The translations under genes and the position numbers were made by a program. Positions 6,896 to 62,341 of a stretch of DNA of 64,000 nt are shown piece after piece (positions within the stretch are counted from its first letter, which is position 1; each line of letters starts with the position of its first letter). The DNA is taken from the NCBI GenBank assembly GCA_965202585.1, contig OZ241833.1, forward strand, positions 34,348,001 through 34,412,000, written 5' to 3'. This DNA is from Thalia democratica. Lineage: Eukaryota. Under the pieces are notes generated by a model that saw nothing but the letters and a program-made list of their open reading frames with translations, did not search any database and was not told where the DNA came from.

Positions 6896-8020
6896 ATTTT
6901 CTACCCATACCTCACATTCCGAGTCATAGTTTGCCTGTTTATTTTAAAGTTTACTTCTCATGAAAAAATTAGTTGTAAATAATACGTATTTCTAGTTTTA
7001 TGGCCTTAAACATAAGGTGCTTATATATTGCGAGTTCTCTAACAAAATACTTTTATAAAACAATTGTAAATTTAATACTTTTACTCTTAGGCAGTTTTAT
7101 CTATGGTGATAAAAACATTATCACCTTTATAACATTATCATTTAAACTGTAAAGTGTTCAAAAAAAAGTTACATAGTTACCTCTGATACTTCATCAATCT
7201 CGAAGTTGTTTGATTGAGAATTTTCCATTTTTAGTTTAAGTATTTCGTTTTTTAGCCTAGACAGATTTAATAGAATGTATAGTTTTTGTTTAGATATTCT
7301 AGTTAACACAGAACTTATAAGTAACTGTAATATAAGCTGTAAATTTTGTTACAAAGTTGATGATTAACAGTATTAGTAAACTATGGATACTTTTTTTTTT
7401 AATTTGGTATGAACACAATATACTAAATGATCAACAAAAAACTATAGTGAAGATAACACTAATTGATTAGAAATAGTCTTTGAAAGGTATTTATGCAATT
7501 TTTAAAGAAGAACAAACTTAAAGAATACTATGTAAAATAGTATGTAGATGAAATACTGTGAAAAAGTTATTTTTTTATTGGTTTAGTTTCAAAAAAGTTA
7601 TTAAATTAAGACTGTTAAATGTATTATTTACTCGAAAAAAATTAACTAGCTCTGATTAGTTTGTATTATACTTTTTACTTATATAATATTTTTATTAATA
7701 CTTTAAGTCTTAGAAGAATAACTTAAGTAAGATTCTAAATTTCTGTATTGAATAGAGATTTTATCAATAGAAAAAAAGTTATATTTTAATCAAAGCTAAA
7801 TATTTCCTAACAATATTTAGTAAAACTGTTTAGTAGATAAATAAAGTTTTGCTGAAAATATGTTTAACTCCATTAAATTTAATAAAAAATAGTCGACAGA
7901 TGTTATTGAAATTAAAATATTGAACTACTATGTTTCTAAATATTATAGAACTTCATAAAACCGTTTTTAATCATCAGGGCGACTTTTGTTTATAACTTTT
8001 ATTCTATAAACAATAGTTTT

Positions 8021-10085: not shown

Positions 10086-11777
10086 TAATTAATTTAGAAA
10101 TTCAGTGTTGAAGTTTTTTAGTACAAGTTAGTTGTAACTAGTTTATTGTTGATTTAATATTTCAAAAATGTAGGTCTTTACTTTTTAGAAGGAAAACAAA
10201 TATACTGTGTGTTATTCAAAAGATTTTTGGCAAGCTAAGCTTTGCTAAAAAACCTCGTCAGTGCTTTAAATAAACTAAAAATTCTATTATGAATGGAAAA
10301 AACTATTACAACACTTAATCTGAATGCAATGTCTTTTTAAACACTTTATGTTTAACTTATGAAATATTTTTTTAGTATATCAATGCTGTTTTCGTTTGTT
10401 CTTATTAACACTTTTGATCAAATTGTTGCTTTAGCTTTTTTTTTTCAATAAGAAAACTTTTTACATAAACCAATTAATAGAACTATAATGTTTAAAAAAA
10501 GGGCTTAAAACAGCTTCAAACTAGGTTTTTAGTTAGGGGAATTTTAAATAATAACAATCTTTCCGCACTTATTACTTTTTACCATTGTTTTTGAATAAAG
10601 CAATATCTCGAATTCACTTAATATTTTAGAAATAATTGATCACTTGGAAACAGATGTTTATTGAAAAACAGTCTATCATCAATCGATCATAAAATATTTA
10701 AAAAATTACTTTATTAAGTAGAATGTATTCCAAACTTTTAAAATATATTTTACGAGCTTAAATAAAACATAAATGTGTTTTGAGTTTTGCTTTAAACTAA
10801 CATAACACTTGTGTTAACTTAAAATGCCTAGATTGAAAAAATAAAGCAAATACGTTTTATTTTATTTTAGTAGTCACGATTGTAAGTATTTTTAAACCAA
10901 GTGACCTTTGTCTCAAATATCATTTCCTTTGAGATACTTTATGTATTTAAAAAGTAACAAGAACCAGTTGTTTACTCAAAATATTCAGTAACTGAATAAT
11001 GATGATTTACAAACTTGTGTAAGTTTATAGATTACTTTTGTTTAAATGCTTTCGATTTCTCATAAAAATAAAGTTTTCTCCGAATAAAAAATAAGTTTCG
11101 TATATTTTATAACGTGAAGTATGATTTATTGCTTTTCGATAGTAGAAACTTTATTTTGTTCTTTTCCTGAAAACGTTTATATTTGAAAACATATTGAAGA
11201 GATATTGTTTAATAGAGATATTGTTTAATAGAAAGATATAGTAAATACTTTGGTTTCGTTCCTAATTTATATATAAGTAGTTATCATAAGTAGCTGAGTT
11301 CATAAGTAGAAAACGTATTTTACAAACTAAAACCTATCATTTAAAGTTTAGAATTTGCAAACGTAGTAATAAAGCAAATATAATACAAAAACTTGTACAA
11401 CAACTAAAAAACTTTCCGTTTGTATAATTTTTTGATTTTTTTAAGATCAAAGTGAAACGTTAGTTATGGTAGTTTCTAGTACAGCATAATACTTGAATTT
11501 TTTTTGTAAAACTTTATTGTTTGCTAGTCAATCAAAAAATTAAAGTATTGAAAAAAAAAACTTCCATGCTAGATTTATATTAACTTATCTGAATTTGTCA
11601 GATTCGATATTCGAAGTGTAAAGTAATCGTAACTTTTGAAAAAACTGTTAAGCTTCCTCTTGTTTTCTAAAAGATAAAATGGCCTTTGAAAGAATTGCTA
11701 AAGCAAAAATATAAATTTTGGCTGTGTTAACATGCATTTGATTATGCTAGTCGTTTAAAAATAGATAAAACTTTAAA

Positions 11778-32700: not shown

Positions 32701-35700
32701 CGTCACTGACATTGTCTTTTGGTTCCCTGAGACCAGCCATCACTGAAAACTCGTTGTCTGATTCTTCACTGCTTTTTAACATTTCGTAGTCGCTACCATT
32801 TTCTGTCGTTCCAAAATTTTTAGGGTTTCTCAATTTTGCATTTTCGTCGTTCTTAAGGTCTGAAAGAGCGTCTAAAAGCGTATTTTTGACTTTTTCTCCA
32901 GCAATATCTTGTTCCGTGTCCGACAGAGCATCATTAAGAATCTTGCCAACAACGCCACTGACATTGTCTTTTGGTTCCCTGAGACCAGCCATCACGGAAA
33001 ATTCATTATCTGATTCTTCACTACTGTCTAACATTTCGTAGTCGCTACCATTTTCTGTCGTTCCAAAATTTTTAGGGTTTCTCAATTTTGCATTTTCGTC
33101 GTTCTTAAGGTCTGAAAGAGCGTCTAAAAGCGTATTTTTGACTTTTTCTCCAGCAATATCTTGTTCCGTGTCGGACAGAGCATCATTAAGAATCTTGCCA
33201 ACAACGTCACTGACATTGTCTTTTGGTTCCCTGAGACCAGCCATCACTGAAAACTCATTATCTGATATTTCACTGCTTTCTAACATTTCGTAGTTGCTGT
33301 CACTCTCAGCTGTGCCAAAGTTTTTAGGGTTTCTCAGTTTAGCATTTTCGTCGTTCTTAAGGTCTGAAAGAGCGTCTAAAAGCGTATTTTTGACTTTTTC
33401 TCCAGCAATATCTTGTTCCGTGTCCGACAGAGCATCATTAAGAATCTTGCCAACAACGTCACTGACATTGTCTTTTGGTTCCCTGAGACCAGCCATCACT
33501 GAAAACTCGTTATCTGATTCTTCACTACTTTCTAACATTTCGCACTCGCTTTGATTCGTGGTCAGCTTAAAGTTTTTGGGACCTTTGAAAGTTATTCAAA
33601 TAAAAATTTCAACACAAAAAAAGTTGTTAAAGACTTATGCTTAAGAACAAAAGTTTTATGTAATAAAAACCAATGCAGCAAAAACCTTCGATCACTTCGT
33701 CTTCCAAGTCGGTAATTTCCAGTTCCTCCACACTTTTCACGGGTTGCCCGCCAGGTGGCACCCTGGCCACTGTTAATATCCCGCTCAGTTTTGTTTGAGG
33801 GTCTTCCCCTTCGTTGTTGGTTTCAGTGAGCTCGTACTGCTTGTCGAAGACGCAGGCAATTTCTCCTTTTTCACCACTTGGTGGCGGGATTGAAAGCTGG
33901 CTTCTCGCGAAGCTGAGGTCGCTTGTTGAGTCTGTTGGTATGAGGTTCGGTTTGATAGGTTCAGTTTTTTACTCTATAATTAATTTTATTTGACGTTTTA
34001 GATAAATTTTTAAAACTTTTGATAATAAAACAGAGTTGTTAATGAAGTTTATTGGATAAATATGGAAACTGATAAATCTTCATGATAACTATAAAAAGCA
34101 TTCAGTTTTAACTTGTTGTGCAAAACTCACTCAACACGATATTTTCAGGCAAGGCCCTGGCAACAGTCAGGACTCCGTTTGCAGAAGTTTCAGGACTTTC
34201 TCCGTTGTCGTCAGTTTCAGTAACTTCGGTTGTGTCGTCATAAACACCAACAATTTTTCCCGCGTTTCCATTGGGAAAGTTCAATCGACTTTGCGAAAAA
34301 CTGATGCTGTCTGTCGAACTTGTATCGCTTTTTAAGCTTCCATTTTCAGGTAATGCCCTAGCAACAGTCAGGACTCCGTTTGCAGAAGTTTCCGGATTTT
34401 CTTTGTTGTCGTCAGTTTCAGTTACTTCGGTTGTGTCGTCATAAACACCAACAATTTTTCCCGCGTTTCCACTGGGAAAGTTCAACTGACTTTTTGCTAT
34501 ACTTACATTGCTCGTCGAACCTAATAAAAAGTATTTTGTTTATCACTTATTTTTTTTATTTTGATATTATTACTTATAATAATATTAAAATACAAAAGCA
34601 TACCTTCTAGACTTTCTTGAGTTTCTATGCTGGCTTTTGATGCTGTTAGTTAAAAAATAAAGTTGTTAGTTTTAAGTAAACATTAAAATTTCACTAAAGT
34701 ATTTTTTAGGTAGCAGTTAATGTTCAATTTAAGTTATTCGTAATGTTTAAGTGCTAAAGTAGTACTTATTGCTTTTAAATCATTGTTTTAAATTTTTTAA
34801 ATATCTATTAATTAATTTTTTTTTTAAAATTTAAATAACTGATTTTTCAGTTACTTTCTAAACTCAAAAGTTTATTTTTATTAATTTGTTTAAAAAAATA
34901 ACTGTGACTTAAAAGCACTTAAGTAAAATAAGAATACTACAACAATGAATAGAACTTAAATATTAACCTCAAATGGTAAGAGCATTTTAAAGCAAAAACG
35001 TAACAACCAAAATTTTTATTAAATAATTTTTTGAAGACATCATTAACAATCCACTTTTTAAAAAGCCAGTAAAAGTACTACACAAAACAAACTTTTCGCG
35101 GATTTTCCGCCAGGTGGCACCCTGGCCACTGTTAACATTCCGCTCAGTTTTGTTTGAGGGTCTTCCCCTTCGTTGTTGGTTTCAGTGAGCTCGTACTGCT
35201 TGTCGAAGACGCAGGCAATTTCTCCTTTTTCACCACTTGGTGGCGGGATTGAAAGTTGGCTTCTCGTGAAGCTAAGGTCGCTCGTTGAGTCTGATCACAT
35301 AAAAATAAATAAACAAAATTTGAAGGTATATATATCTTAATTTTTTAGTTTTTTAACCTATTTTTTTTGAATGCGTATAAGAGATTATTTTAGGGTTAAA
35401 AAACTGCTGCCCGCGGGCAAAATGCGACCCGCTAAACGAAAAATTCTAGCTCACAAAGTGCTTATTAGCTAAAAAATAATTCTCCGAGAAAAAAAATATC
35501 AACGATGAGAATTTTTGTAATAAATTTATGAAAACATAATTTTTTTGCTCGTGAAAAAACTGTTATGACTATTACGTCTTTAACTTATTAAACATTTAAT
35601 GCCGTATATATATATTTTTTAATTATAATTGATCGAATACTTTAAAACTCCCAAAAAAAACCTTCAGCGTATCTGGCATGATATAGGCAACCCCTATAAA

Positions 35701-38700: not shown

Positions 38701-41700
38701 TAAAAAAACAAATATTTAGGTCATATTAATATCTACAAGCCATTTTTTTCATTTTTGTAAAACATTAAATATATTTTGAGATATGGATTAAATAAAGTAA
38801 AAATCATAATTATTTTTAGTAATTTTAAAATATCTTGAAAAGTATGCTACGTTTTAAAAAAAAGAAAAAAGTGGCTTGTAGATATTAATAAGATCTACAT
38901 ATGTATTTTTTATTTTTTTCAAACTTATATTGCTTATTGAGATATAGTCTTTTAAATATTTTTTTAAGAATTTGAATTGTCGGAATTTGAGTTGTCCGAA
39001 TTTGAATTGTCATGTAACCCCAAAACTTAGTTTGCATAGTAAAGTCTTGAAAGAATAAATAAATATCCAGTATGGTAAAAACTGTGCAAGTGTTTAGCAA
39101 TATAAATGTAGTTTAACATACTAATTTACTATTTAATGAAAATATCAAAAACAAGTAGACTACCTTGAACCTTTGGATCAATTATAGAATTTTCAGGTGT
39201 TTTGTTTTCTGTTAATAAATTGTTTTATATTAGATGATAAGTTAGAAATATAGTTTATCTTGAATTTAATTTTTTTTTAATCTTATACATATTGTATTTT
39301 GATAAATAAAAAAACTAGTAATTACAAAAAAAAAAAACATAATATATAGCCGTTATACTGTAAAGTAAAAAGTCAAACTTTTGCTGTTTGGTATATAACC
39401 AACTTAATTGTTTATTAAGTAAAAGAAAAAATTTAAGGTAACTTTTTGCTTGATTTATTACTATTACAAGTTGAATTACACTTTTTTATAAAAAAGTACA
39501 ATTTATTAGAAGTCTATACTCTTGGGTCAACAAAGATTATTAACTACCTTAGATATTTGTTTTAGTCGGCTTTTTTTTCTAATTTTTATATTTATAATTT
39601 TTTATATTTGTGCTGATTTTTTTTCTTAACTGAGCCAACATATAACCATTAAGCTCTAAAAGTCTAAACCTTCTAAATAAACTTTTTATGTTGCAAAAAT
39701 TCTATACAAACATTTTTAATTCTAGGCCAAGAAAAACCAAGTGAAACGTTTATTTTTTATCGCAAAACGGTTTAAATATCTCAATAACAATTACAAGCAA
39801 AATCAAACCTTTATTACTGACAACTTCTTTCCTAGCATCTACAACCTCCTTCCTCGGGAAGAAATCGGCCATGTTGATCACGATGTTCTGTACGTTGTTG
39901 GTGACCGTTCCATTTCCCCCTCCCTGCTGGTTGTTCAGCTGATCCAGCTTGATCATGCGAGGGACCCCGTTCTCGTCCGGTATGCTGATCATGATGTGCT
40001 GCTCGTTGTTCGTGCTCGGGGGATTCACCGTCTGTTTCGGAACGCCTAATACGTTATTTTGCGGGTTTTTCTCCGAATCGCGCCTTTCTTTTGCTGGCTC
40101 CGCGACTGAGGTCTGGCTCTCGTCCGAACTGCTTGATGCGTCGAAGAAAAACTGGTTTCGGCTGAGTTCAAGCTTTTTCGGTTCAAAGTCGAAACCTCCT
40201 TTGGATACGGGCTTGCCCAGAGGGTTTAAACTGTTTTCCAGTTTCAGGAAAAATGAATGTTCAGACTTGACAGGCCTGCCGAGCTGTGGGGTTAAACCTA
40301 TTTCAGGTTCTGATTTGTTAGCTGAATTAAGCTTAACTTCTGATGCTACTACTAATTTTAGGTCTGGTACTGATTTCAATACATTTTCAGGTTCCGGATC
40401 AGGCTCTACAACTTTTAGCGGTTTCTGTATTGGCTCTGGTTCAACAACTGTTTCAGGTTCTGGCTCAGGTTGTGATTCAGGTTGTGGCTCAGGGTCTGGC
40501 TCAGGTACCGGTTCAAGTTCTGGCTCAGTTACCGGTTCAGGCTCAGGTTCTGGTTCAGGTTCTGGTTCAGGTTCCGGTTGTGGCTCAGGTTCTGGTTCGG
40601 GTTCTGGTTCAGGTTGTGGCTCAGGTTGTGGCTCAGATTCTGGTTCAGGTTCCGGTTCAGGTTGTGGCTCAGGTTCTGGTTCGGGTTCTGGTTCAGGTTC
40701 TGGCTCAGGTTCTGGTTCAGGTTCTGGCTCAGGTTCTGGTTCAGGTTCTGGTTCAGGTACAGGTTCAGGTACAGGTTCAGGTTCAGGCTCTACTTCCACT
40801 ACTGTCTCTTTTCTCGATTCCTCGACCGGCTCCACTCTGGCTGTTTCCTGCTTCGCCTGCCTACCACCAAAAAAGTCGGCCATGTTGATTGCAATGTTCT
40901 GCATGTTGTTCACAGTCGAGGGTAACCCCCCTTGACCCTGCTGCTCGTTCAGCTGGTTCACCCGCATCATGGTCGGCGCCCCATCGTTGCCGGGCATGCT
41001 GATCGAGAAGTTCTGCTCGTTCCTCGTCTTCACTGCTTCGACAGGTTCTACCACTTTTTCAGGTTCTCTACAAACCAGCACTTCGGGTTCTGGTTTAATA
41101 ACTGGTTCTAAACTTACAACCGGGTCATCAACTACAACTTCTTCAAGCTCCGGCACTGAAACTACCTCCGATTTCGCTTCTTCAACTGTTTCAGGCTCTA
41201 CTTCTACTTGCACAACTGTGTCTGGTTTCACTTTTTTTACAGATTCTTTTTTCTCAACATTTTTGCACTCCACAGCTTCGCTCGGCTTGGGCTCGTTTTT
41301 TTCCAAACTTTTCGGCTCGACTTTCACCACTGTCTCTTTCCTCGCTTCCTCGACAGCCTGCGCCTTTGTCGCTGCCTCCGGCTTCGTTTCGCTTGAGTTT
41401 GCCTGCCTGCCACCAAAAAAGTCGGCCATGTTGATTGCAATGTTCTGGATGTTGTTCACAGTCGAGGGTAACCCCCCTTGACCCTGCTGCGCGTTCAGCT
41501 GGTTCACCCGCATCATGGTCGGCGCCCCGTCGTTGCCGGGCATGCTGATCGAGAAGTTCTGCTCATTCCTCGTCTTCACTGCTTCGACCGGCTGCACCTT
41601 GTTCGACCTGAAGTAGGAGAACAGGCTCTTGCGCGACTTTTGCGCGGGAACGACGTCCTTTATGGACTTTTTCGAAACTGCCAGCGACGGCGCGCTTTTC

Positions 41701-44700
41701 TTGTTCAAGTTCTCGCTTGCAACTGGAGCGGTGGCGAGCGCAAAGTCGTCGTTTTGAGTTGCGATTTCATTGGTGAGCGAAGACTCTTCGACCTGGTTCT
41801 TTTGCGGCTCTTCGCCGCGCTTTTCATACGTCGGAACATCTGCAGGCAGCATTTGCTGTTTGCTGCTGAAGAAATCCACGAGGCTTTCCTGCTTGCTGTC
41901 ACCCGCGTGGGGGTTTGTGTACCTGTAATTAAATTTTCTTGGTTGCGGGAATTACAAAAATAAGAAGTTAACATTCTAGCATAAAAAAAATATGTTGGAA
42001 AAAAATTTGACTAAACTTAAGGAAGTTTTAATTAAAGAATGCCTAAATTTTGTTCTACCAAATAAAATAACAAACTTTAAATTTTTATAGGGTTTTGTTT
42101 AATTTTAAGTACTTCAAAACCTCCTCAAAATCTTCACAGTCTTTAAGAAAATGTAAATTTAAAAGTAATGTATCTTTTCGACACGAAAAACATCTTTAAT
42201 TTAAATGAAACAACTCCGAATAACGTATAACAAGCCTAACAAAGATAATAAAAAAGTCATTACCACAGTGAGTACTCTGCCAGTTCATCGCCCACTTTGT
42301 TGTGCTTCTTCATGCAGAGCGGGAATGGGCAGCAGAACAAGCAGCAGACCATGCAGCACCCCCACAAGGTGGCCATCAAGAATATGAACATTATGAAGCC
42401 CAGTCCCCCCAGTGCGTCCGCTGTGGTGAGCAATTCAGGTAATTTGATGAATAAACAAACATAGTTCAAGTAATTGTTTTTGTTTTCAAAGTTTTTTCTT
42501 GTACTTCTTTTTATCTTGGTGCAAAAAGATTAGACAAGCTTTGATTAACCATTTTTGTATTAATTCATTCTCATATTAATTTATCATTCTATTTTAACTA
42601 AGATTATTTTTATTATACTTCTAATAATGTACTCTTTCTTTTTGTTAAAACATTGTTCGACTTATTTTTGTTCGTAAAAGTAGACTAGGTGGGAAATAAA
42701 AATCTAAAGATAGTTGTAAATATTAAGTTTGAAATTAAAAATCGGTATTTACTATTTTTATTTGCAGTTTGTTGTGGTAAAACAACTAACCTGACAAAGC
42801 GCCGACTTCAGGTTTACAGTTTCCACCTTGAGCAGCTGAAAAGTTATTTTGCTTACAAAACATGTTTCTATTTATCAAATATTAATATAAACAAAACAAC
42901 TTTTTCAGTTTAAATAATTTAGTTCATAACAATTTCTTAAAATCTATGCAAATTTACTAGAATTCATTTTAGTTTTGGAAAGTAAGTGAAAAACAAATGC
43001 TAAAATAAACTTAGTATTTTAATATTAAAACGATTGTTGCTACGAAAAAACCTCGAAAATCATTACAAAAAATAAAAATTTAGATTTAAAACTTTATTTA
43101 CTTCTGTTTGAAAATAAAAAAAATTTCTCTAGCCTAAAGAATATGCTTGTGTCTTAAAAAGTTGTATGTTTAATGCATTTTTATCAACATGAGAATTTAA
43201 AGTTTAGTAAACATATTTAAGTTTCATATTTGAAAAAACTGTTTAGTAGATGACTTAAGCTATATTTTATTGCTATATAAAAAAGCAATCAATTTTAGTG
43301 TTCAAAAATTTAGTTACCACTACATAAAACATTGAGTCTTAACTTGAAGCAGTTTTCAATAATCTAAATTAAAAAAAAAAATATTACCAGGGTTGGGCCA
43401 AGTTATGAGAGGTACAGTTTCGTTGAGGAACGATTTAGTAGTGCCACATTGGTAAACTTCATTGGTGAACTTGTATGATGGGTTGAACATCTTTACCTCC
43501 TCTGTATTATCAAGTATAAATTAACTTTTGTTTTTGCTTCAGGAATAAGTTGCAATAGGTTGTTTTTTCTTTAGTAACACTTTTTTGTCTCAATATTAAT
43601 TTACATAAGCTCAAGTCTGTCAGTCTTAAGCTTGACAAGAGTAAAGTTAAAACAAAGTTTTAATTTGTATAACTAGCAAGGTATTAATATTTTATTTTCA
43701 TTTGTTTTAAATTATCTTGACATTTTAAATGTTTAAAAACTTTTCAAAATATAGTTTTCTAGTTTTTCAAATCGTGTTTGGAACTATTTTGTAGACGAAA
43801 AACTTATTAAGAGCATAATATCATAACTCTAGCCTCTGAAACTTTTTTCAAATTCTTTTCTGAACACAAGAGTAAGGGATTGAGATCCTCTATCTACTGA
43901 TACTGACTGCACTTCCACTAAATACAAGTCTTCCAGTTTTTCTTTGCATTCTTTAAAATGAAAACAATTTACTACTAAGTAAATAGTTTTATGAAAACTT
44001 AATTTTAGTTATAACATAGTAAATAAAAAAATAAAAAACATATTTGATAAAATAAGATTACAATGCATTATTTTTCATGTAAAGTTTTTTTTCTTTTTAG
44101 TAAACAATCGTTGTAAAAGTAGCTTGTTTAAAGTTTAAGTTCTACTGAATTTTTTTCAATCAGAAATACTAAAATATGTTTCTAACTTTTGTCTTTTTTT
44201 AAAGCTTTTGTGTCTTTTTACAGCTGCCAAAATACTTTCAGATATAAAACAAAGCTTTTTACTAATGTCCGTTAAAACTTATAAGAACGTATAACTTTTA
44301 AACAGTCAAAGCATACTGCTAGAAAACTGCTAAAATTATTAAAAATAAATTTAATAAGCGAACTCTTAAGCCATTCTATTTATTTAATTAAGTAGAAGTC
44401 ACAGAAGTCTTTAAAACACCACTCTCTCAAAGCTGTACAGTTGAAATACATATTACTTGCTCGAGTTGTTTTTAAACTAAAATTCATGACCAACCATACA
44501 GGACGGACACTTCATCAAATGAGAGCCGAATCCCCCTTAGTTTTTCGTTCACCTCAACTTTCTTGAACTGGTCTCCGCAGCTGCCGTCGTAAATGCCACT
44601 TGCTGTGTCTGTTTTTCACCAAATATAAACATCTGATAAATTACATTTTATTACATTTTTTCTTTACTTGAAAGTACAACTTTTAGATCCAAAAAATATG

Positions 44701-47700
44701 TACAATAGTTGCATTTTACGTGAGAATTATTAAAATTTAAGCAGTATTTTTTTACGTGATTAAAACAATTTACTAGCAAATGCTGGTGAAGTAAATGTAC
44801 TTCACTTCAGACAAGCAAACTAACAGTTTTACTGTTTTGTAGGCAAGTAAACAACCAACTGTACACACATGTGTTCAGTTTACTAACAAATGGGTAAGTG
44901 TACATATTTGTAGTTTACTAATAAATGAGTAAGTGTACATATTTGTAGTTTACTAACGTATGAGTAAGTGTACATATTTGTAGTTTACTAACAAATATGT
45001 ACATATTTGTAATTTACTAACAAATGAGTAAATGTACATATTTGTAACTTACTAACAAATGAGTAAATGTACATATTTGTAACTTACTAACAAATAGATA
45101 AAAGTACATATTTGTTGTTTACTAACAAATGAGTAAATGTACATATTTGTAGTTTACTAACAAATAGATAAGTGTACATATTTTTAGTTTACTAACAAAT
45201 GCTGTTGAAGTATCCCTTCAGCCCGATGGCGAAACCCCCGTCTCCGGGTCCCACCGTGCGGAAGTGAATGTTCAGCTTGCCGTCGGTTGATACCACCCTC
45301 TGTTGCCCCTCCAGCCTACCTCCGTACTTTCCCAACAACACGTTGTTCGAGTACACCTTCGAATGATGATTTTTAAACTACAAACACAAGCAATAATATT
45401 GTTTCGTAGAATTCCAAGCAATAATGATGGTTTGTAAGCTATGAATACTCAAATAAGACTTTGTGAGCGTTGTCCTAACTTAAAAGTTATAAGTTATTAA
45501 ATAATTATTTGACATTAGATAAATATTTAGACAAACAATTTAGTTATTAACAGCAGTTGAATAACTATCATGATATAAAAAACATAAAAAATAATTTCAA
45601 CTATAGATTTACTCTAATTTAAATAGTTTTATAAGTATAAAAAAGAACTACACTAATCATAATCTTTATGACATTCAGTTTAGTAAATTAAAACGTAAGT
45701 ACTTGATTACCAAGGATCTTTATAAACTTTAAATAACCAATACATTTTGTTAAAACTTTATGAAGCATCATTAACAGTCGAAATATTAAAAACCTCATTA
45801 ATTTAAAACTTTTAAACACTTAGACAATTTTTACCCTAGGTATTAGAACTAAAATTATAAAAAGTATGATTTTTTTAAACAGGGGTTCTCTTACCACAAT
45901 TAGAGTGTCGAAATTTAAAACAACACAACAAACAATAAACAAAATCCAAAATATATAAAAAAGAAAGATAAATTTTACAATTAAAATCTGATTATAACAA
46001 TCGTCTTTTAAAATTTACGATTTTTTCAAAATTAAGCTTGTTCTAGTACAAATCTAAGTCTACTTAAAAGTTTATCAAAAAAAAAAAACGGACTAAAAAA
46101 TATTTCCAATCGTAACTTAGTCAAAACCAACCAGCATCTCGTCGCAGTCCCTCAGCTTCCCCTCCTCGATGACCAGCTCCACCTGGTTGCCCGCCGTCGT
46201 GCACAGGTTGTACTCGCACTCCAGGTAGTCCCCGTAGAACTGCGGGTAGTTGGGCGTCTGGAACACTTGCTTCTGCGTTGGGGCCACGGCGTCGAAGCCG
46301 CACACTTTCGCCTCGTCCGAGGTCCTGTTGAGCGCCTCGTCGCTCACCGAGGTGTACATGCCCTTGAAGCCGACCTTGGCGAAAATTTTGTCGGTGACGA
46401 ACTTCACGGTGATTTCCCGTCCCAAGGAAATGAACACCCTGGGCCTGCCCACGTCGCCGGCGATGACTCCCAGCAGCTTGCCGTTCGAAGAGATCTAAAA
46501 GTAGGTGCAAGTATTGAATAACAAAGAAGTTATACATAAAATCAAGGACTGCTTACAACAAACAACATAAAAATTGAAAATAAAAAGAAACAACAGTGAG
46601 AGCAAACAATAATCGAAAAAATTGTTAGAAATTTAAAATAAAATTAAAACCTCCATGCGGTCGCAGCAGCACTCCGAAGTGCCGTCCAAGACGGTGAAGT
46701 TGACCTTCATGCCCTCCTCCGCCGTGAACACCCACTCCCCGTACATGTCCGACGGGTACTTCTCCGGGTAGTTCGGGGTGGTGAACTCCGAGATGTAGTC
46801 GGTCGCCACAGCCTCGAACCCGAATCGCTTCTTGGTGCTGACGTTGTCGAAGAAGGTGGGCACCGGAGTGGTTTCCTGTGGTTTTTCCTGGGGTTCATCT
46901 CGAGGTGGTGGATTTGGGCTGTTTCCCGATGAAGACCCAAAGTTGTTTGAACTCCCAAAGCTGTTACTGCCGTAATTACTGTTGCCATAGCTGCCGCCAT
47001 AAATACTGCTGCCGCCGTAGTAAGAGTTGTAGTAAGAATTGTAGTAAGAGTTTAAATAGCTCGGCGAGTAGAAGCTGGAGCTGCCATAGCCGTACGGGGA
47101 ATACCCGTAGCCAAAACTGAGACTCGGGCTGTAGGTACTTCCGAACGAGCTGCTTCCGCCGTAAGTGTTCCCGTAGCTGTTCTGCGTGTTAATGTAGGTG
47201 TTCGACGCGCTGTTTTGAGTACTCTGCTGGTTGTTTTGCACGTTGCTAGCCGAGTTCTGATTGTTCGACGAACCGCTGCTGGAGGTTGAGCCTCCGTTTA
47301 CCGACCAGCCGTCGGTAGACCAGCCGCTGTCGGAGCTACTGTCGTCGTCTTTCGCGTTGTCATTGTTACTACTAACATCATTGTTGTTGGTCTGAACGTT
47401 GTTATTGTTGGTTTGAACGTTGCTTGATGATATATACGTTGGTTGACTGTTTCCGCTGCTAATATATATTGTGCTTCCATAAGAAGGAAACGACGAAAAG
47501 TCGTACGTGTAGTAGCTCCGGTAGCTCGGCTTCAGGCTGTAGTAGCCGGTGAACCCGCTGTAGACCCCGTTCTGATCCGACTTGAACCTCACGATGAGCT
47601 CGTTGCCGTCGCTCTCGAACCTCTTGGGCGTCCTGATCGATCCCGATATCTCCTCCTTTATGCACCCGTCGCTGATCACCTCCAGCTTGTCGCAGCACTC

Positions 47701-50700
47701 CTCGCTCTCCCCGCTCACCACCGTCAGCTTGATCCTCCTGCCCGCCGGCGCCACCAGCTTCCACTGGCAGCTCAGACCGTTCTGGTAGCTGTCCGGGTAG
47801 CCGGGCGTCTCGAACGTCGTCGGCTTGTCGCCGACCGGCAGCACCTGGTCGCACGGCGACTTTATGTGGTACGCGCCCTTGTAGTAGCCGCTCCTGCCCA
47901 GGCTCGGCTCGCTCGCGTACCTGACCACCAGCGTCCCGTCCGAGGAGCCGTACGTCTTCTTGTTCGCCGCGTCCGTGATGGTTCCCGACACGAGCTTGTT
48001 GGCCGAGTAGGCCTGCAGCAGCTCGCAGCAGTCGTCAGAGTCTTCGGCTTCCACGTCCAGCGCGACCTGAAACCCCGGCGGGGCCGTCAGCGTCCATTTG
48101 CACGCGGTGACCCTGGAAGTGTTGGACCAGCACTCGGGCATGAGAAAGTCCTGCGGCTGGTAAGTCGCCTGCGCCTCGAACCCGCACTCCCCGTCGAAAT
48201 TCTTGACCTCGGGGCGGCTCAGCACTTTGGGCTTTACGACGTAGGAGAAACGGAAGCCGACGTCCTGGTTGTGGTGATCGGTGGTGAACTTTACGGCCAG
48301 GGAGTTCCCCGTCGACGTGAACAGCATCGGGCTCTGCACCTTGCCCGACGTCTTTCCCAACGATCCGTTCCCGGAAAACACTTCGACGAAATCGCAGCAG
48401 GCCTCGGAGCCGCCGCTGATGATCGAAAAGTAAACCTGCTCGTCGTTCTCGCTGATGAACTTCCACGTGAAGCTTTCCGAGGGCGCGTAGCTGTGCGGGT
48501 AGCCCGGCGTGCTGAAAAAGCGAACTGTTTCGGTGACCTGAAAGGTGCGCTGCGCGACGAACTCGCAGGCGTCGTGGTAGTACGCCAGAAAGCCTTTGAA
48601 CTGCCGCGTGCCATCGGAAAAGAACTTCAGGGACAGGAAGCCGCCGGTCGACGTGTAACTTTTCCTCTTGACGGAATTCCCCGACTCCACACCGACCAGG
48701 ATGTCGTTGCTCAAAACTTCTACGAGGTCGCAGCACGCCTCGGTTTCGATTTCGACGAAAACCAGCTCGACCTCGCAACTGCTGGACCTCGAACGAATGT
48801 TCCAGGTGTAGTAGGCGTGGCCGGGGTACTCTCCGGGGTAGTTCGGTGACAGCAGGTTGATGTAGTCGTCGGTGGAGTAGAGGTCGATCGTTTCAGCGTC
48901 CGTTTCGTCTTCGTCCGTATCGTCGGACGGAACGTCGACGTACGACCTGTTCTGCACGCTGTACAGCCCTACGTAGCCCGGGCTGGTCACGCCCTCCGGC
49001 GAGCTGAACAGGACCTTCAAGCTTCCGTTCGTCGACGAAAACGTCCGCGGGCTGTCGACGGAGCCGGAAACGTTGGCGATCAGCTCGTCGCCAGAGTACA
49101 CTTCCACGCAGCACGAGTCCGATTGGCCGCTGGACAGGGTGAACTCGACCTGCTGGCCGGCGGGGGCGACAAGGTCGTAGCGGGAGGTCGAGCTGAAGGG
49201 GCACTCGTAGGGGTAGCCGGGGGAGGAGATGGTCATGGTGCGCGAGTAGGCGGGCAGGACGGAGGCGTCCAGCTCCGAGTCGATCTGGTAGTAGCCGTGG
49301 AAGCCCTTCATCTCGGTTTCCTCGTCGGCGTAGAACTTGATGACCAGCATTCCGTTGAGCGAGGCGAACGTTTTCTGCTCCGTCAAGTTTCCCGACACCT
49401 CGTAGAACAGGCTGCCGTTCACCCATATTTTCAGGTAGTCAACTTCCGGCTCGGTTTTTCCGGACACCAAATACAATTTCACCTGCTTGCCCTCGGGCGC
49501 GTATATCTTCCACTCACAGTAGGCGTACGGCGGGTAACTTTCCGGGTAGTTGGGGGTTGAGAGGGTCTTGGCAGCGTACCTCGCCTCGGCGAACCTGATG
49601 CACGTTTCCACTTTGTTGTTTTCGCTTTCTTCGTCCTTCAAGAGGTCGTCCGTGGCCACCTTGTACTGCGCGTAGATGCCCTCGAACTCCAGCGCTGAGT
49701 CGGAGTAGAAGTGAAGGTCTAGAATCCCGTTGGTGGACACGAAGCTCTTGGGCGCGGTTACCTGGCCCGAAACGGTCCCGATCAAAACATCGTTGGACCT
49801 GATTTCCAGTTTGTCGCAGCAAGCTTCCGTCTGTCCGTGCAATACCAGGAAGTGCACCTGCTTTCCCTGCGGAGCCCGTATCTGGCACTCGAAAGACGTC
49901 TTCTTGCCGTAGTTTAGTGGAAATCCCGGCGTGGTGAAGTTCTGCTCCTCCTCCGTAGCGGTCAACATGAAGCCGTCGGAGCTGGTGTCCAGCTGAAAGT
50001 AGCCGTGGAAGCCCGGGTACTCCCGCACGTAGTCGGACCTGAAGTAGACGTCCAGCCTGCCGTCTACGGATTTGAACTCGCGCGGGTTCACCAGCAGCCC
50101 GGAAACTTCCCCCAACTTGGTCTTGTTGCTGTACACCTCCAGCTTGTCGCAGCACTCTTCGCTTCTACCGCCCACCACCACCAGCTTCACCTGCTGATCC
50201 GGGTCCCGCGCCTTCAACACCCACGTTGCCGTCAGGAAGCTCTCGTACGACCGGGGGTAGCCGGGCGTGCTCCAGGTGGTGGAAAACTCGACCACTTTGG
50301 GGGAGAACTTGACGGTCGGGCCCAGAGTCGTGGTTTCTTCCGTCGTCGTGGTCGTGGTGGTCTTTTTTGTCGTGGTGGTCGTGGTGGGCTTTGTCGTGGT
50401 CGTCGTGGTCGTCGTCGTGGGCGTTGTCGTGGTTGTTGTGGTGGTTGTGGTCGTGGTTGTGGTCGTGGTTATCAACTGGTACTCGTAGTAGCCCGTGAAA
50501 CCTTTAAAACGAAAAAGAGGTTAGTATGTTTTGAAAAATTACAAAAACTACTAAAGAATCACTTGTTAAGTATATTACAAATAAAAATAAACATTCACAG
50601 CTGACTTTAAAAAGTTGTCATAAAAACATTCAGTACTATTCAAAACCAGCCAAAAAACCTGAAAAATGCAGCAAATAATCCGTTTCGAACGTGATCCTCA

Positions 50701-55430: not shown

Positions 55431-58400
55431 TTTAAGGGTTACAGTGTATAAGCTGTTACTTTTGAGAGAAAAATTTGTACTGGTTGAAGTAGAAATAAAT
55501 AAATTTGAAAAAAGGTGTTGCTGAATTGATTGCTTGTTTTGCTTAGAACTGGTTAGTTACATATATTGTTTTAAATTTATTTTGATTATTTAGTTTATAT
55601 TATTTGTTATCAACATGTAGATAGCTTTGTTTAGTTTTAAACTTAAAAAAAATTTAACACTTTAGCTACAATCGAACTTAAAAACTTGGAGATATGTTTA
55701 TATTTAATTTTATATAAGCTAGTTTTATGGTTTGTTATATTTTATAAACTTTTTTTGAACTAATTTAAATCAAAACCATAGTCACAACTTGATTTTAAAA
55801 TCAAAAACATTTTTTTCACCTCAAACACTATTTCCCTCTATCAAGCTTTCCCAGTGAGCAGTGATTCATAAAAATCAAAACTTTTAGTTGAAAAAAATAG
55901 CGCTCATTAGCTTTCAACCACCCACGTATACTTATACAGAATATTGCTCAGCTGGTATTAGCTTAAAATTTTGTTGCTTTTGATTGAATGTGTTTGAAAA
56001 GGATATAAACACATTAAACATTGAAATTTGTTTAGAGTTTGGTTAGCATCTAATGCTTTGTTTTTTAAGTGATTTAGAAAAAACTGCTTATCTAGCTGAA
56101 GCTTTGTTTTATTGTTTTTGATATTTATCTTCATGTTTTTGACAGTTTATTTTTTTAAGTTGTTTTGTTTATTTTTGAAGTTTCTGATAAACTTTATCAA
56201 CAAAATTGTTTACTAAATGAAGTTCAAATCTAAAAAATAACCGAAACCATTCATGATTATTTTTATAAGTAGTTTTACAAACTGAGACTTATTGTTATGA
56301 AATAATAATCTGCAATACAAAAGTATTTTAGAAACATAAAATTAAAGTTCAATTAAAGAAATCAGAAAGTTAAGTGTAATTAATTTGTGTTGACTTATTA
56401 AGTTTATGCTTAATCTTTTAAAATTCATTTAAACTATTAATGCTTCTAATTGGCGTTAAAAGTTGTTTGAGTTTAAACTGTTTGTTAAAAATTAAAAAAA
56501 AACTATTCATAGATTTAGTCTTACTTTGTCTCTTTTTACTTTTAAATAGTTTTCTTGGTTTCTTTTACTTAAGACTTTTTTTTTCAAATACGACACCTTA
56601 CATTTTTCAACTTTACTTTTTAGACTTGAAAGTAAACTAATATTAAAAATTGGTTTTAGATGAAACACTTTTATTGTATGAGGAGCTTGTCTTGTGTTTA
56701 TATTACTCTGTCTAAACTTATACAGTCCATTTTCAAAATTAAGTTCAAGTTTAATGTGCCATTAATTAACAATTAATTTGACAGCTAACTCGACTTACTC
56801 AGTTCAAGAAACATGTTTTAATGTTGATCGTTAACAAAAACATCAATTAAACATTAATAGACAGATTAAAATGTATTTAATAATAACAACATATTTAAAC
56901 AGTACTCATTCTTTCATACACTAACACATGTCTTTATTAGCAAACGCTTGTATTTATATTTTGAATAGTATACATTTAATATGCATTTTTATTCAAGTTT
57001 TTATACTTTTTAATGAGCTCTAGTATGTTGTATAATAGCAAATATTATTAAACCAAAGTATGTATATATGAACTGCATTTAAATTAAACTATGTTATTTT
57101 TTGCTTTGTCTGCAATAAACAGGTTTTGAAAAGTGCTTGAACTTATGACCTAGTAATTATTAAATTTAAGTATAAACTTGTTTGTTATTATTAGTAAAAC
57201 TTTATTTGTGCTAATAATGCTCAAGATAAGATTACACTTCGAATAAAGTACATATCTTGAAAATCTATGTACTTCCATTAAATCTCCTTAAGCCTTATCA
57301 ATAATGACGTAATGATTCAGTTTACAATATTTGTAGATAACTAGAATTGAAATTTTTCTAATCTTACTTAATGGTTATTTAACTGTTAGAACTAACTTCT
57401 CCAGGATTTTCAACTAAATTTGGAGTTAATTAGGTGAGTTTTAGTTTTTTATTTTTAATTATAGAAACAAATTAAAAACATGTTTAGTTATTAAATTTAA
57501 GCTAAAATTTTAAATACGTTTAGAATCTGTCTGTTTAGTTACAAAAATAATCTAGTATAGTATACATTTTAATTTTTATTAACAACAACAGTCAAATATG
57601 TATTATTTTTTAATGATTTAATAGTCTTTTAGAATTGTTAGCAAGTTTATAATTTATACTTAGTCTTTTTGATTATTATAAATTCTTTATAACTATGATA
57701 ACTTATTTTAAAGCTATGACTTAAAAGTATAGGTTAATTTTAATCTTTAAGAATAATAACTTTGGCTTTATCTAAGTAATACAACGCTTTCACTAAAAAC
57801 TTAGATGGCTGTAATTACTGCTATTTTCATTGGTAATACTAATACTATTTCATATAAGACAGACTTTATATATTAGTTAATCCTTACAAGTATTAGGCTT
57901 TAAAAGCTTTGTTGTTATACAATTTTACAAAGCCTTGTGTATTACCAAGCCTATATTGTATTTGAAAATTTATTATTAACTTATTTTAAACTTAAATTAT
58001 AATTAGATTAAATTTATCATACTTTGGTGTTATTGTTTTTTTTTTTGCTAGATTTTTCGTTTGTTATTGTTAAATTTACTATGTATGTGCTTGTTTTTTA
58101 AGAAAACATAAATAATGTATTTTTTTTAGCTGTTTGTTTATCCGCATTTAGTAGCAAAAATAAGCAAGTACTGTTGTTAAAAAAAAAGAAACATTTTAGT
58201 TTATTTTTTTCCCAATTGGATTGTTTATTGTTATATAGTTAAAAAATATCTTATAGTAAATCTTCTCCAATTTAATTTTTACAAAAATTTTAACTTTTCA
58301 ATATCTTTTTCAATACTTTTTAAAACTAAAATAGCATTTTAGTATAATTAAATTTTGGTATTTCTTAAACAGTTTAATTTTAAGTAGAAGTATTTAAACA

Positions 58401-59188
58401 CAAAACTATTAGTAAGAAGATAAGCCTTGAATACATTTAAAGAAAATTTAGTTTTAGATAGGATTTTTACTGTTCTTACTTAAAAAATTAAAGTTAATTT
58501 ACTTTAGTTAATATAAGCTTTATTAGAACTTGGTATTATATATTACTGCTTAAAATCGAACAAGTTTACTTTGTAATTACTTTTTAGTTGCTTATTTTTA
58601 AACTTATTTTCTTTAGTATATTTTAGAACAACTATATATAGCAACTAGAAATTAATTTATTTTGTTGAAAGTTACAAGTTCAAGTTTTTATAAGTCGAAA
58701 CTTGATCCATAGGTAATGAAGTAGAGTAATAAGTAAAAACAAGCTCAGTAAAAGCTTCATAACTAGTTTTATAAAACATTACACACCATGTTTCACTTTA
58801 CAAAGAGTTATTTAAACCTATAATTTACTTGTTTTCATGTGGTTCTTGTTTTTGAAAAATGTCTGATATAATTTAACAAAAAACTATTCATGAATATTAA
58901 AATGAGATGTAACACGAATTGATTTGCTTACTTTAAATAAACTTTGTCATACATTTAAATCCAAATTATAATTGCAATTTATTTAAACAACTGTAAATAA
59001 GCTTTATCAAAAATAAAGTTTTTCTAACAACCTGATAAAGCTTTTACTCATAACTTGTTTTATTAAATAGTATTTTTAAAGTACTTTTTTTAGAATAATT
59101 TTATAAATGTTATCATTTTATAATTGTTATATTTTTAAACAACTGTACTGCACAAGTGTATTATAGTACAGATTACTGTACTATAATA

Positions 59189-59841
59189 CAGTAATCTGCC
59201 GCTTAGGTACGCACTTTGAAGACAGCGCAAAAGTGCGTACCCAGCCGGAAGTGCGCACCAAAGAATATTGGTTTTTAATTATCTACATTAAGGATAAATA
59301 CATGTTCATTTTTTTAAAATAGCTGTTTTATAGGTTCTTAAAATTAATGATTCTATCATACGGTATATAAATGTTAGTTTTATTGTTCATTTTTCCGTAT
59401 ATCTAAAACTTAGTTTAGAATTTTATACGTTTTTTACATTTTTGTTTTAGTAATGGGGTATGTAAATGTTAATTGCACTGTTCATTGTTTTCGTTTATAT
59501 AAATTTTGTATGACCGTTTAAATATTTTTTATTCCTATGTTTTAATCATTGGGTGTGCAAATTTAAACTAATCTGTTTTCGTAACTGTTAAATAAGTAAA
59601 CGGCAATATGTTTGTTTTAATATTGGATTTCATATATAATTTGTAAGTTCATAACTTTTTTTTCTAATTTGTTTAATTTTAATTTATCTGTTATTAAGAC
59701 AGTTTAACTTATTTTAAATATCGTAGTTTTGTATTACTATTTCTAGATTCTTTTTTTTATTTCAAAGCCTTTTAATACAGCGATTTTAGGCTAAAAAGTG
59801 CCTACCCAAAGAAATGCGCATACCTGAGCAGCAACTTATTG
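59189..59841. mobile_element. Tc1/mariner-type MITE just upstream of the 7-TM gene
   Basis: TA-flanked 29-bp imperfect TIRs (21/29 by eye): CAGTAATCTGCCGCTTAGGTACGCACTTT vs reverse complement of AAATGCGCATACCTGAGCAGCAACTTATTG. Confidence 0.7.
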
Positions 59842-59973
59842 TATTATAAATATAAAGTTTATTCAAACATGATTGAAATTTTATTATATTTTATTTATTT
59901 CAATAGCATGCGTTTATCTTTTAAAGATTTTATTAACATATTTTTTCCAAACAGCCTATTAAAACCCTCTACC

Positions 59974-61230
59974 ATGCAAGTGCGCCACCACCTGGCCAGA
60001 AAGCTCCTGTACCACCGGCAGATCGACGACTCGCCGGGCACCATAGCAACCGACTTCATCTTCGGCGCCCTCATGCTCCTCTCGTCATTCGTTCTGGCGT
60101 TCCGCGTCGTCAAGCTGAAAAACCGCCGACACAAGAGGCAGCAGAGAGGCTTCAAGTCGGAAAGCGGCGACGAGATGATAAAAGATGACGCTTTTGCCCG
60201 GAAGACGAAATTCGGCGAAGCTGTTGAAACGGGTGCCGTGCTGGTGACTTTTCTCCTGTTCAGTTACGGCCTGATGTTCTTTGTGGGCGGCTTTATCCAC
60301 AACGACGTGCAGAACCTGGACTTGGAAGTTTCAAAAGAGGGGAATTTCTTTCAGGCCACCATGCGCGCTTACGGCGTTGTCTTACCGTACAGAATGCTGT
60401 GGTCCTTCTGCTGCTTCTGGGCCGGGTTGGTCGGCTGCTTCTTCGTCCTCCTTTGCGCTTCGGCTGTGTCGATCAGGAACGAGATCCGCAAGAGCCTCAA
60501 GGAATCAACAAAAAGTTCATTTGAAAGTAAGTCGGAAAAAAAACCCTGTGAAAGCATGTCCGAAGCGACCGAGAACGCGATTGGTTTGCTGACCAAATCA
60601 ATTGCCATAGTCATTTTTCTGGCCACTTTGGGCAGCGAACTTCACAAGATCGTCTCCTTTCACTTTCGCCGGATGAGGAACCAGGAGATCGTGGACCTCC
60701 TGAACTCCGAGGTCACTCCTCCTACAGGGAGTTCCCCAAACTCTACTCTATACTTATCCCAATCTCCCCAACTCAATATCGAGGGCTTCCAGCCGATCGA
60801 CTGGTCCAACATGTGGCCGATGTTCCTGCCCACCATAATGCTGCTAACCGCCAACCTGGTCCATGCGGTTTTGGCGGTCTACCTGCAGATTAGAAACAGC
60901 ATACAACGTTCGGAGGAAAGGCAGGGCGAAATTTTTTCAGGGTTGAACAGGGGCCTGTGGGCGCAGTCGGTCGGGTCCGCCCTTATGTGCCTGGGCGGCG
61001 TTCTGCAGGTTTCCTTGGCGACGCTGACGGACATGTCGGGCCATCACCATGACGACGGTCACCAGGGACTGCCGTGGGCGTTCAACCACAACGCCATCTA
61101 CCACGTTACCACGGGAATCGGGGCGATGGTGCTGGCTTGGGGGCAGTTTATTGCGTTGAAGATCTGCAGAAAAATCCCCCGAGTCGAGGGGATTGGGGAA
61201 GTTAGCAAGGAATTTGTTGTTGAGCTGTGA
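59974..61230 (+). CDS. Intronless 7-TM membrane protein (418 aa), DUF6962/CREST-like putative metal-dependent hydrolase
   Basis: Acceptor ttccaaacag at 59954, then accATG; GC3-rich to the TGA at 61228-61230; seven hydrophobic segments; motifs PGTIATD (start of TM1), GGFIH (end of TM2) and FNHNAIYH (last TM). Family assignment is from recalled motifs, not a search. Confidence 0.85.
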   Translation: MQVRHHLARKLLYHRQIDDSPGTIATDFIFGALMLLSSFVLAFRVVKLKNRRHKRQQRGFKSESGDEMIKDDAFARKTKFGEAVETGAVLVTFLLFSYGLMFFVGGFIHNDVQNLDLEVSKEGNFFQATMRAYGVVLPYRMLWSFCCFWAGLVGCFFVLLCASAVSIRNEIRKSLKESTKSSFESKSEKKPCESMSEATENAIGLLTKSIAIVIFLATLGSELHKIVSFHFRRMRNQEIVDLLNSEVTPPTGSSPNSTLYLSQSPQLNIEGFQPIDWSNMWPMFLPTIMLLTANLVHAVLAVYLQIRNSIQRSEERQGEIFSGLNRGLWAQSVGSALMCLGGVLQVSLATLTDMSGHHHDDGHQGLPWAFNHNAIYHVTTGIGAMVLAWGQFIALKICRKIPRVEGIGEVSKEFVVEL

Positions 61231-62341
61231 ATTTAATAAAACATTGTGTGGTTAAAAAAGTTTCAGAAGTTGTGAAAGCTGGTACTGGGCAGCCTTAGAT
61301 ACATGACAATTCTTTTTGTAATTATACTAAATTCTAACTAGATAAATTCAAAGTAAACGAATTCTTTTTAAAACAAAAAATAAATAAAAATAGAGAGGGC
61401 TTGATTTTTCTGTTTGTTTCAATTAGTTAAAGTTAATATTAGTTTTTAAATCACTGTAATTTTTTTTATGGCGACTAAAAGCTCAAAGTTTTCTGTTGAC
61501 TGTTTGCCAACTGAATTTGAGATTGACAACAGAAAATTTTTAGCCTTTTTTTGTAGGTTAAATAGCTAAAGTTACTTTTAATGCTGTCTTGTTTTTATGT
61601 TTTAATATATTGATTGACTTTACTGTTCATAGCTTTTAAAACAATTTTTACTCTTTAGCCTCAAATTTTAAATTTTTTGTGTCACTGTAAGTATTTTAAA
61701 GATTTTATTTTTGGTGTTACATATTTTTATTGTGTATATTTAAAAGCTTATACAAAATCTGGTTATTTTACTAAATTTAATTTTTTCATTGTGTTTATCA
61801 TATTTTTGTTTTCACTCTTACAAACTTACTTGTTGTGTAAAGCGTAAAATTAAAATGAGAATTTTATTTGAGATAACTCGACAAAGTTTACATATACACT
61901 CGAGTTAGAATTCTTACATCTTTAATTATTAATTTTTTTAATGATAAAGTCATCAATTTTTTTCAATAATACTCTTAAGACAAAACTTTAGTTAAACTAC
62001 AAAATATTTAAAAGTTCTAATACTTTTGTGCTTATAGTATTTCTTAAATCGTGAAAACTAGTGTTCCAATAATAAACATTAGTTTTTACTTTGCTCAAAC
62101 AGAGCCGCAATAATTGAGAATTCTCACAAATTTTAAACTTGCTTCAACCCCATTAAAAAGAATGTTACAGAGCCATCGACTACTTTAAATGACCTTCTTA
62201 AAAAAATCATTACATTATGATGATCTTTAATGTGGTTTAAGTACTGCTCAATTCATATTTTTTAATATTAATTGTGTAAAAGGTATTTACAAAAACGTCC
62301 AGGTAGAAATTTATGTGTTAAGTAACGTTGGTGCATTAAAT

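Follow-up and report, generated by a model that had tools for sequence, protein, structure and literature searches.

The 64,000-nucleotide (nt) stretch of Thalia democratica DNA analyzed here as a whole (contig OZ241833.1, hereafter "the window", in whose own numbering all positions are given) contains, at 59974-61230 on the forward strand, a gene for a 418-amino-acid (aa) protein with seven transmembrane (TM) segments. On balance, this gene is probably a tunicate single-coding-exon member of a diverged branch of the DUF6962 family (PF22285), the product of which would have a metal-containing active site at the outer face of the membrane, while its ultimate origin is left open. The first-pass annotation, made from the sequence letters alone, had depicted it as an intronless gene of an old, domesticated horizontal gene transfer (HGT) from bacteria, encoding a membrane lipid hydrolase related to the CREST enzymes, and some of these statements have stood up considerably better than others. 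What follows is a first evolutionary and anatomical description of an animal branch of this uncharacterized family, a branch that is conserved in tunicates, is under purifying selection and is apparently missing from the other chordates.

The open reading frame (ORF) begins with the ATG at 59974 and continues, as had been claimed, without interruption up to the TGA at 61228-61230, with a GC content of 0.54 (0.72 at third codon positions, GC3) amid AT-rich flanks whose GC content is about 0.22-0.26; as a neighboring multi-CUB gene is likewise GC3-rich (0.82), the description of its GC3 as "host-like" also holds. RNA contigs from four public runs were aligned to 57300-61400 (4,101 letters), and the contigs of three of these (X1, X2 and X5, of which two are metatranscriptomes from the sea and the third carries the label of the window's own organism) show a splice joint, 57433|59955, at which 2,521 nt with GT..AG ends are skipped, with no joint seen inside the coding part in any of the RNA contigs lying over it. 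One X5 contig extends a further 107 nt in the 5' direction, matches 55521-55550 exactly and is followed in the genome by a GT donor. The gene has three exons and two introns, both of the latter in the 5' untranslated region (UTR), and its coding sequence (CDS) is a single exon, meaning that "intronless" is true of the CDS alone:

55445..55551, + strand: 5'UTR exon 1 (minimum extent), the 107-nt loose 5' end of X5 contig record 17
55552..57336, + strand: 5'UTR intron 1, GT..AG, 1785 nt, inferred from the X5 contig that joins exon 1 to 57336/57337 and from the GT donor at 55552
57337..57433, + strand: 5'UTR exon 2, 97 nt (X1, X2 and X5 contigs cover 57336/57341-57431)
57434..59954, + strand: 5'UTR intron 2, GT..AG, 2521 nt, joint seen in X1, X2 and X5
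59955..61357 (end approximate), + strand: exon 3, which holds the last 19 nt of the 5'UTR, the complete CDS and the 3'UTR
59974..61230, + strand: CDS, 418 aa and stop, 7-TM protein of tunicate subfamily A

RNA coverage of exon 3 is unbroken from 59953 to 61100 in X1 and from 60713 to 61357 in X5. The splice acceptor 19 nt before the ATG, which had been ascribed to either a UTR intron or trans-splicing, is real and serves the 2,521-nt intron, and CTGAATTTGGAGTTA at 57414-57428 (exon 2) is common to the 5'UTRs of transcripts from related species (L003 and L004); since the acceptor is used in cis and the exon sequence is shared with these transcripts, trans-splicing is not needed, and it was rejected, the 5' sequence in question being a genomic exon 2.5 kb upstream and no sign of a trans-spliced leader having turned up. 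An N-terminal extension from the TTG at 59839 was rejected as well, as it would lie within an intron and an in-frame stop precedes the ATG by 60 nt in the spliced mRNA. The ratio of nonsynonymous to synonymous substitution rates (dN/dS) is 0.19-0.26 against three relatives whose proteins are 97%, 83% and 62% identical to that of the window. This is a real, transcribed and functional nuclear gene of a pelagic tunicate, under purifying selection; contamination and recent HGT were both rejected because of the spliceosomal 5'UTR introns, the AT-rich host flanks, the host-like GC3 and the presence of the family in ascidians. Two further features of the locus are worth recording. Within intron 2, at 59081-59765, the word depth in the DNA runs, otherwise about 70-250, reaches 2,000-10,700 and loose ends are numerous, which indicates a very high-copy repeat element. 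Just past the stop codon, at 61230/61231, some RNA contigs and the related contigs L001 and L002 have a 14-nt insertion (ATTTCTTTTTGATG, or GGTG in the RNA contigs aligned here), which has the look of a 3'UTR indel that is either polymorphic or distinguishes close species.

As had been predicted, the protein is a 7-TM one, with seven hydrophobic segments in the hydropathy profile and seven helices in the AlphaFold2 model (pLDDT 74, pTM 0.76). Lysine and arginine residues number 28 on the odd loops (1-2, 3-4 and 5-6) and the C-terminal tail against 9 on the even loops and the N-terminal tail, and the sole N-glycosylation sequon (NST) lies in loop 4-5; because of this bias, and because the sequon falls in an outer loop, the N-terminus is predicted to be outside and the C-terminus inside (N-out/C-in). 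All four of the motifs pointed out in the first-pass annotation (P-x-T-x-x-T-D, GGxxH, FNHNxxYH and the GHHHDDGH loop) are present:

60025..60054, + strand: motif 1, D18-D-S-P-G-T-I-A-T-D27 (SPGTIATD being residues 20-27), just before TM1
60286..60300, + strand: motif 2, GGFIH, G105-H109, at the outer end of TM2
61039..61062, + strand: His-rich loop GHHHDDGH, residues 356-363, before TM7, specific to the pelagic clade
61081..61104, + strand: motif 3, FNHNAIYH, residues 370-377, at the outer start of TM7

Each of the three motifs proper is found at the extracytoplasmic end of its helix (TM1, TM2 and TM7, respectively). In an alignment of 13 sequences of the family (A1), D18, H109, F370, N371, H372, N373 and H377 are invariant and T23, D27, G105, G106 and W143 (the last in TM3) nearly so, and across 59 sequences spanning bacteria to tunicates only H109, F370, H372, N373 and H377 never change. 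This defines a small set of invariant outer-face residues that lend themselves to mutation, namely three His and one Asn. The His-rich loop takes the place of the C-P-L-P Cys of the other eukaryotic members, and in the alignment it comes close to a His that is conserved in bacteria; one could speculate that it supplies an auxiliary metal ligand.

The assignment to DUF6962 came from the relatives of the window protein. When 13 family members were scanned singly, PF22285 was matched, in register, by nine, with P0019 exceeding the Pfam gathering cut-off of 27 bits (38.2 bits) and the other tunicate members falling below it at 9.8-19.6 bits. Further compact eukaryotic proteins from a separate metagenome scan also exceed the cut-off (L018 at 49.5, L019 at 42.8 and L017 at 35.7 bits). 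Scanning bacterial genomes for the FNHN motif gave three loci whose proteins of ~215 aa match DUF6962 at 120-146 bits and carry EPDVTLTDY, GGTVHGF and FNHNALYHV, and the alignment of such bacterial members (A3) is matched by the tunicate alignment A1 in hhalign over TM1-3 (probability 92.9, E 3.7e-7). A language-model search likewise placed DUF6962 clusters first, the top one at 0.91. The window protein thus shows the pattern of the family, i.e., seven TM segments with TD(Y/F) at TM1, GGxxH at the end of TM2 and FNHNxxxH at the start of TM7, and its membership is supported, albeit transitively; the statement that this motif trio marks DUF6962 is borne out by its being common to tunicate and bacterial members. 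A literature search on DUF6962 found no papers.

Bacterial DUF6962 proteins (~215 aa, for example from metagenome-assembled genomes of Gemmatimonadaceae and Longimicrobiales) share with the window protein the seven TM segments, the predicted N-out orientation and the three motifs, with (D/E)P..T.TD(Y/F) preceding TM1, GGxxH where TM2 ends and F(N/D)HNxxxH where TM7 begins. The window protein, in contrast, is twice as long, with helix extensions and the long cytoplasmic loops, rich in Lys, Arg and Ser, that are seen in tunicate members generally, and has a eukaryote-type N-terminal RKLLYHR..DDS extension; just before FNHN, bacteria have His-Pro and most eukaryotes Cys-Pro-Leu-Pro, whereas the window protein has its His-rich loop. 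The family to which it belongs is probably a strongly diverged, loop-expanded eukaryotic branch of DUF6962, with the window protein falling into its subfamily A.

Relatives of the window protein are few. A word-indexed search retrieved only three close ones, all on short marine contigs, and a HMMER search of 1.84 billion representatives matched 15 proteins, among which no non-tunicate animal is named, the named ones being all from ascidians (two uncharacterized proteins each from Styela clava and Clavelina lepadiformis); the remark that there is no standard animal orthologue was, therefore, apt. Taken with the CUB neighbor and the strongly AT-rich genome, these matches mark the window as tunicate DNA. 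A profile search (A2) of a 5.8-billion-protein set was swamped by low-complexity words and added P0033 only, and a scan of viral contigs gave no relative. The ascidian proteins, XP_076805326 (P0016) and CAK8677261 (P0018) of C. lepadiformis and XP_039267718 (P0021) and XP_039248900 (P0012) of S. clava, belong to the same family as the window protein, with 21-23% identity to it and all motifs kept; the family is present in at least two ascidian orders. The window protein has lost a pair of Cys that all of them retain in loop 6-7. P0016 and the P0021 type have a single-exon CDS, as does the window gene, whereas P0018 and P0012 belong to a shorter subfamily with five CDS introns. Outside of the tunicates, a metagenome scan revealed compact eukaryotic proteins of 250-310 aa (L017-L019, grouped with P0019), whose closest Atlas clusters bear the labels Rotifera and Bacillariophyta. 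The source of L018 is a compact non-tunicate eukaryote: at L018:170-2542, on a contig of 43% GC, the 310-aa DUF6962 gene lies convergent to, and 200 nt from, an uninterrupted OSCA/RSN1_7TM channel gene, and the protein bears a His-rich stretch of its own (HHHGHGH), but in loop 1-2. The DDS-GTY form of motif 1 and a Cys-rich loop (C...CPLP) ending before FNHN are features of the eukaryotic members only.

Where did such a gene come from? Its CDS is a single exon in every subfamily A member examined (the window gene, Clavelina P0016 and Styela P0032, P0014 and P0010), which makes this an old trait of the subfamily and not evidence of a recent transfer, and as the ascidians share the gene, it must be old, the uninterrupted CDS predating the split from them. 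Subfamily B, on the other hand, has six coding exons, with all five introns at matching positions in the two genes compared and the first of them six residues past the invariant TM2 His:

L011:4001-6658: subfamily B gene, Clavelina P0018
L012:4001-9893: subfamily B gene, Styela P0028

In the maximum-likelihood trees (which sampled bacteria narrowly, with mostly Gemmatimonadota-like sequences, left out the rotifer and diatom ones and have an unknown root), all eukaryotic sequences fall on one side of a long branch and the sampled bacteria on the other (100/100), and the sister group of subfamily B consists of the compact eukaryotes and subfamily A (95/83), with tunicate monophyly not rejected by the approximately unbiased (AU) test (p 0.177).

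That the tunicate stem took up a DUF6962 gene straight from bacteria, as an old and since domesticated HGT, is a scenario that we deem unlikely, despite several facts that are in keeping with it: DUF6962 is abundant in bacteria (615 matches at E ≤ 0.001 among the 8000 candidates scored, with the 120 of these 615 that were listed being nearly all of the bacterial type, about 215 aa), ascidians are the only animals named in the 1.84-billion-representative search, and the subfamily A CDS is single-exon. The compact non-tunicate eukaryotes (P0019 and L017-L019), however, not only group with tunicates against all of the sampled bacteria and share with them the C...CPLP loop and DDS-GTY but even fall between the two tunicate subfamilies, the AU result for tunicate monophyly notwithstanding; subfamily B has its five conserved introns, and no bacterial donor clade was identified within the mostly Gemmatimonadota-like sample. 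Of the original "old HGT" the "old" part can be kept, while the bacterial transfer is unsupported, and the family itself, although indeed abundant in bacteria, is not purely prokaryotic, given the compact eukaryotic members and the clusters labelled Rotifera and Bacillariophyta. An uninterrupted CDS together with bacterial-looking motifs is simply insufficient for calling HGT here, because the family also includes a paralogue rich in introns and relatives from eukaryotes other than tunicates.

As regards the uninterrupted CDS alone, subfamily A might be a tunicate-stem retrocopy of an intron-bearing gene resembling those of subfamily B, one that later gained its 5'UTR exons and long cytoplasmic loops; such an ancient retrocopy would account for the uninterrupted CDS as well as an intronless import would, and we consider it a possible, if somewhat doubtful, explanation. 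All of the subfamily A CDSs examined are single-exon, and the five introns of one subfamily B gene recur in the other, while the introns of the window gene are confined to the 5'UTR, and 5'UTR-only introns are common in retrogenes that recruit upstream promoters. Yet a non-tunicate group stands between A and B on the tree, which means that either the A/B split may predate the tunicates or the rooting is unreliable, and a gain of introns in subfamily B is an equally possible direction; a poly-A remnant or target-site duplication is not to be expected at such an age. The ultimate origin may lie in vertical descent with losses, in transfer between eukaryotes or in transfer from bacteria, with a direct bacteria-to-tunicate transfer being possible but unsupported.

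As for what the protein does, the most likely functional reading, tentative as it is, would be that of a metal-dependent enzyme acting on a lipid or lipid-linked substrate of the outer leaflet. H109, F370, H372, N373 and H377, together with T23 and D27, would bind a metal ion and so make up an active site, located in the outer or luminal leaflet and arranged in the manner of the three-His zinc site of the CREST superfamily. This superfamily, which consists of the alkaline ceramidases, PAQR/AdipoR, Per1/PGAP3, SID-1 and TMEM8, has a zinc site to which the end of TM2 contributes one His and the start of TM7 two, and ACER1/2 and PGAP3 have an N-out/C-in topology with the site in the outer leaflet (PMC3146951, PMC13562381). 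The window family likewise forms a 7-TM bundle in which three invariant His, one where TM2 ends and two where TM7 begins, lie on one face of the membrane.

A number of observations, nevertheless, weigh against the account favored here. The window protein itself matched nothing in Pfam (E ≤ 10), DUF6962 included, or in NCBIfam, so the Pfam scan gave it no family of its own, and because it lies below every Pfam threshold, its membership can only be transitive. The analogy with CREST, defined by seven core TM segments, SxxxH closing TM2, a conserved Asp where TM3 starts and HxxxH opening TM7 (PMC3146951), is also imperfect: the Ser of SxxxH is Gly in the window family (GGxxH), although the His (H109) is there; no Asp is conserved at the start of TM3, the conserved residues being W143, which lies in TM3, and an Asp with which TM1 begins; and TM7 begins with H-x4-H (H-N-x-x-Y-H), not HxxxH. 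None of the 13 eukaryotic and five bacterial members scanned matched the Ceramidase, HlyIII, Per1 or DUF3522 models of Pfam (at E ≤ 1-10), a profile search of PDB sequences gave no match at E ≤ 10, and language-model scores to Ceramidase and DUF3522 clusters were only 0.78-0.82. Foldseek searches with both models against AFDB clusters and the PDB resulted in weak generic 7-TM matches (E > 1e-4 throughout, TM-scores mostly < 0.55), and in VIA-align, where many G protein-coupled receptors (GPCRs) and designed GPCR-like folds reached Z of 13-17, AdipoR2 (Z 14.4) and ACER3 (Z 12.9), with HlyIII and PGAP3 also among the fold matches, did no better than the GPCRs. As the CREST matches lie among, and not above, the GPCR-like ones, the fold cannot assign the superfamily, and the relationship to CREST that the first-pass annotation had stated for these motifs is not supported. 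Finally, the only other Pfam family with a weak collinear match is 7TMR-DISM_7TM (PF07695), a 7-TM module that occurs in sensor kinases and cyclases of bacteria.

This last match raises the question of whether these proteins might instead be 7-TM sensors or receptors, i.e., stand-alone relatives of the 7TMR-DISM module whose outer His/Asn cluster binds a ligand or metal signal, which strikes us as the second-ranking, yet still unlikely, answer. The bacterial protein P0070 is collinear with PF07695 (residues 18-198 on profile positions 16-195, E 1.6e-5), and P0113 gives a weaker match, but the 25.4 bits of the former are under the cut-off of 29. The N-out/C-in topology is common to both families, and the proteins structurally closest to the Atlas cluster of DUF6962, which are histidine kinases with 7TMR-DISM and GGDEF proteins with seven TM segments, have TM-scores of about 0.6 (0.56-0.64); the GPCR-like character of the best PDB fold matches and the long Lys-, Arg- and Ser-rich cytoplasmic loops of the tunicate members would also suit a sensor. 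DUF6962 proteins, however, stand alone, with no fused signaling domain in any member of the family seen, and they carry three His and one Asn that are strictly invariant from bacteria to tunicates, a degree of conservation that speaks more for chemistry than for the recognition of a ligand.

The bacterial members provide a further clue in the form of a neighboring gene. At four bacterial loci (L005, L006, L020 and L022), the DUF6962 gene is followed directly, on the same strand, by a FAD_binding_4 gene of ~500 aa, the two of them overlapping by 4 nt in L022, with the called ORFs overlapping in L005 and L006 as well:

L005:2806-5156: pair of DUF6962 and FAD-linked oxidase genes
L006:73-2210: pair of DUF6962 and FAD-linked oxidase genes
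L020:5001-7294: pair of DUF6962 and FAD-linked oxidase genes
L022:5001-7168: pair of DUF6962 and FAD-linked oxidase genes

The oxidase is nearest to the DprE1 and sugar-1,4-lactone-oxidase models, below their cut-offs. In L005 and L006, its N-terminus has a twin-arginine (Tat) signal and a lipobox, and the oxidase would for this reason be exported to the very side of the membrane on which the conserved DUF6962 residues lie. The pair looks like a conserved two-gene unit and may point to what DUF6962 does, though L007 (Acidiferrobacterales) has no oxidase neighbor, and neither has the window gene.

Could the DUF6962 protein, then, be a redox or anchor subunit, with its His residues binding haem or another cofactor, that takes electrons from, or serves as the anchor for, the exported flavoprotein oxidase? 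The direct same-strand succession and overlap of the genes and the export signals of L005 and L006 are what such an arrangement would look like, and the Gly-Gly before the TM2 His could pack on a flat cofactor; yet the four loci come from related bacteria, with L007 as an exception to them, no eukaryotic partner is known, and the same operon fits an enzyme pair equally well. Most b-type cytochromes, moreover, have their haem-binding His in the middle of the membrane, while those of DUF6962 are at helix ends. We regard this possibility as quite improbable and rank it third, behind the sensor and the metal-dependent enzyme.

Returning to the metal-dependent enzyme, a more far-reaching version of it, which should be seen as a long shot, would have DUF6962 as an unrecognized class of three-His metal enzymes of the outer leaflet, analogous or distantly related to CREST, with an oxidase partner in bacteria, and kept or acquired by the tunicates. 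If this were true, bacterial DUF6962 and an exported flavoprotein oxidase akin to DprE1 and the sugar-lactone oxidases would jointly process a lipid-linked substrate, and tunicates, along with a few other eukaryotes, would have kept or acquired a chemistry that the other chordates lack. The exported FAD oxidase of the bacteria, in any case, offers an experimental route to the function of the family.

As to the remainder of the 64-kb window, the contrast drawn between the uninterrupted CDS and the intron-rich nature of the other GC3-rich genes is only partly correct, as the window also holds uninterrupted ORFs of 1252, 709 and 1280 aa, and a single-exon CDS is not exceptional there. The first two of these, at 29783-33538 (1252 aa) and 39753-41879 (709 aa), both on the reverse strand, are without a significant Pfam domain, with the product of the latter being acidic and repetitive and showing a weak PARP-repeat-like match. 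The third, at 46636-50475 on the same strand, is the GC3-rich (0.82) multi-CUB gene already mentioned, whose 1280-aa uninterrupted ORF encodes at least six CUB domains (PF00431, 258 bits).

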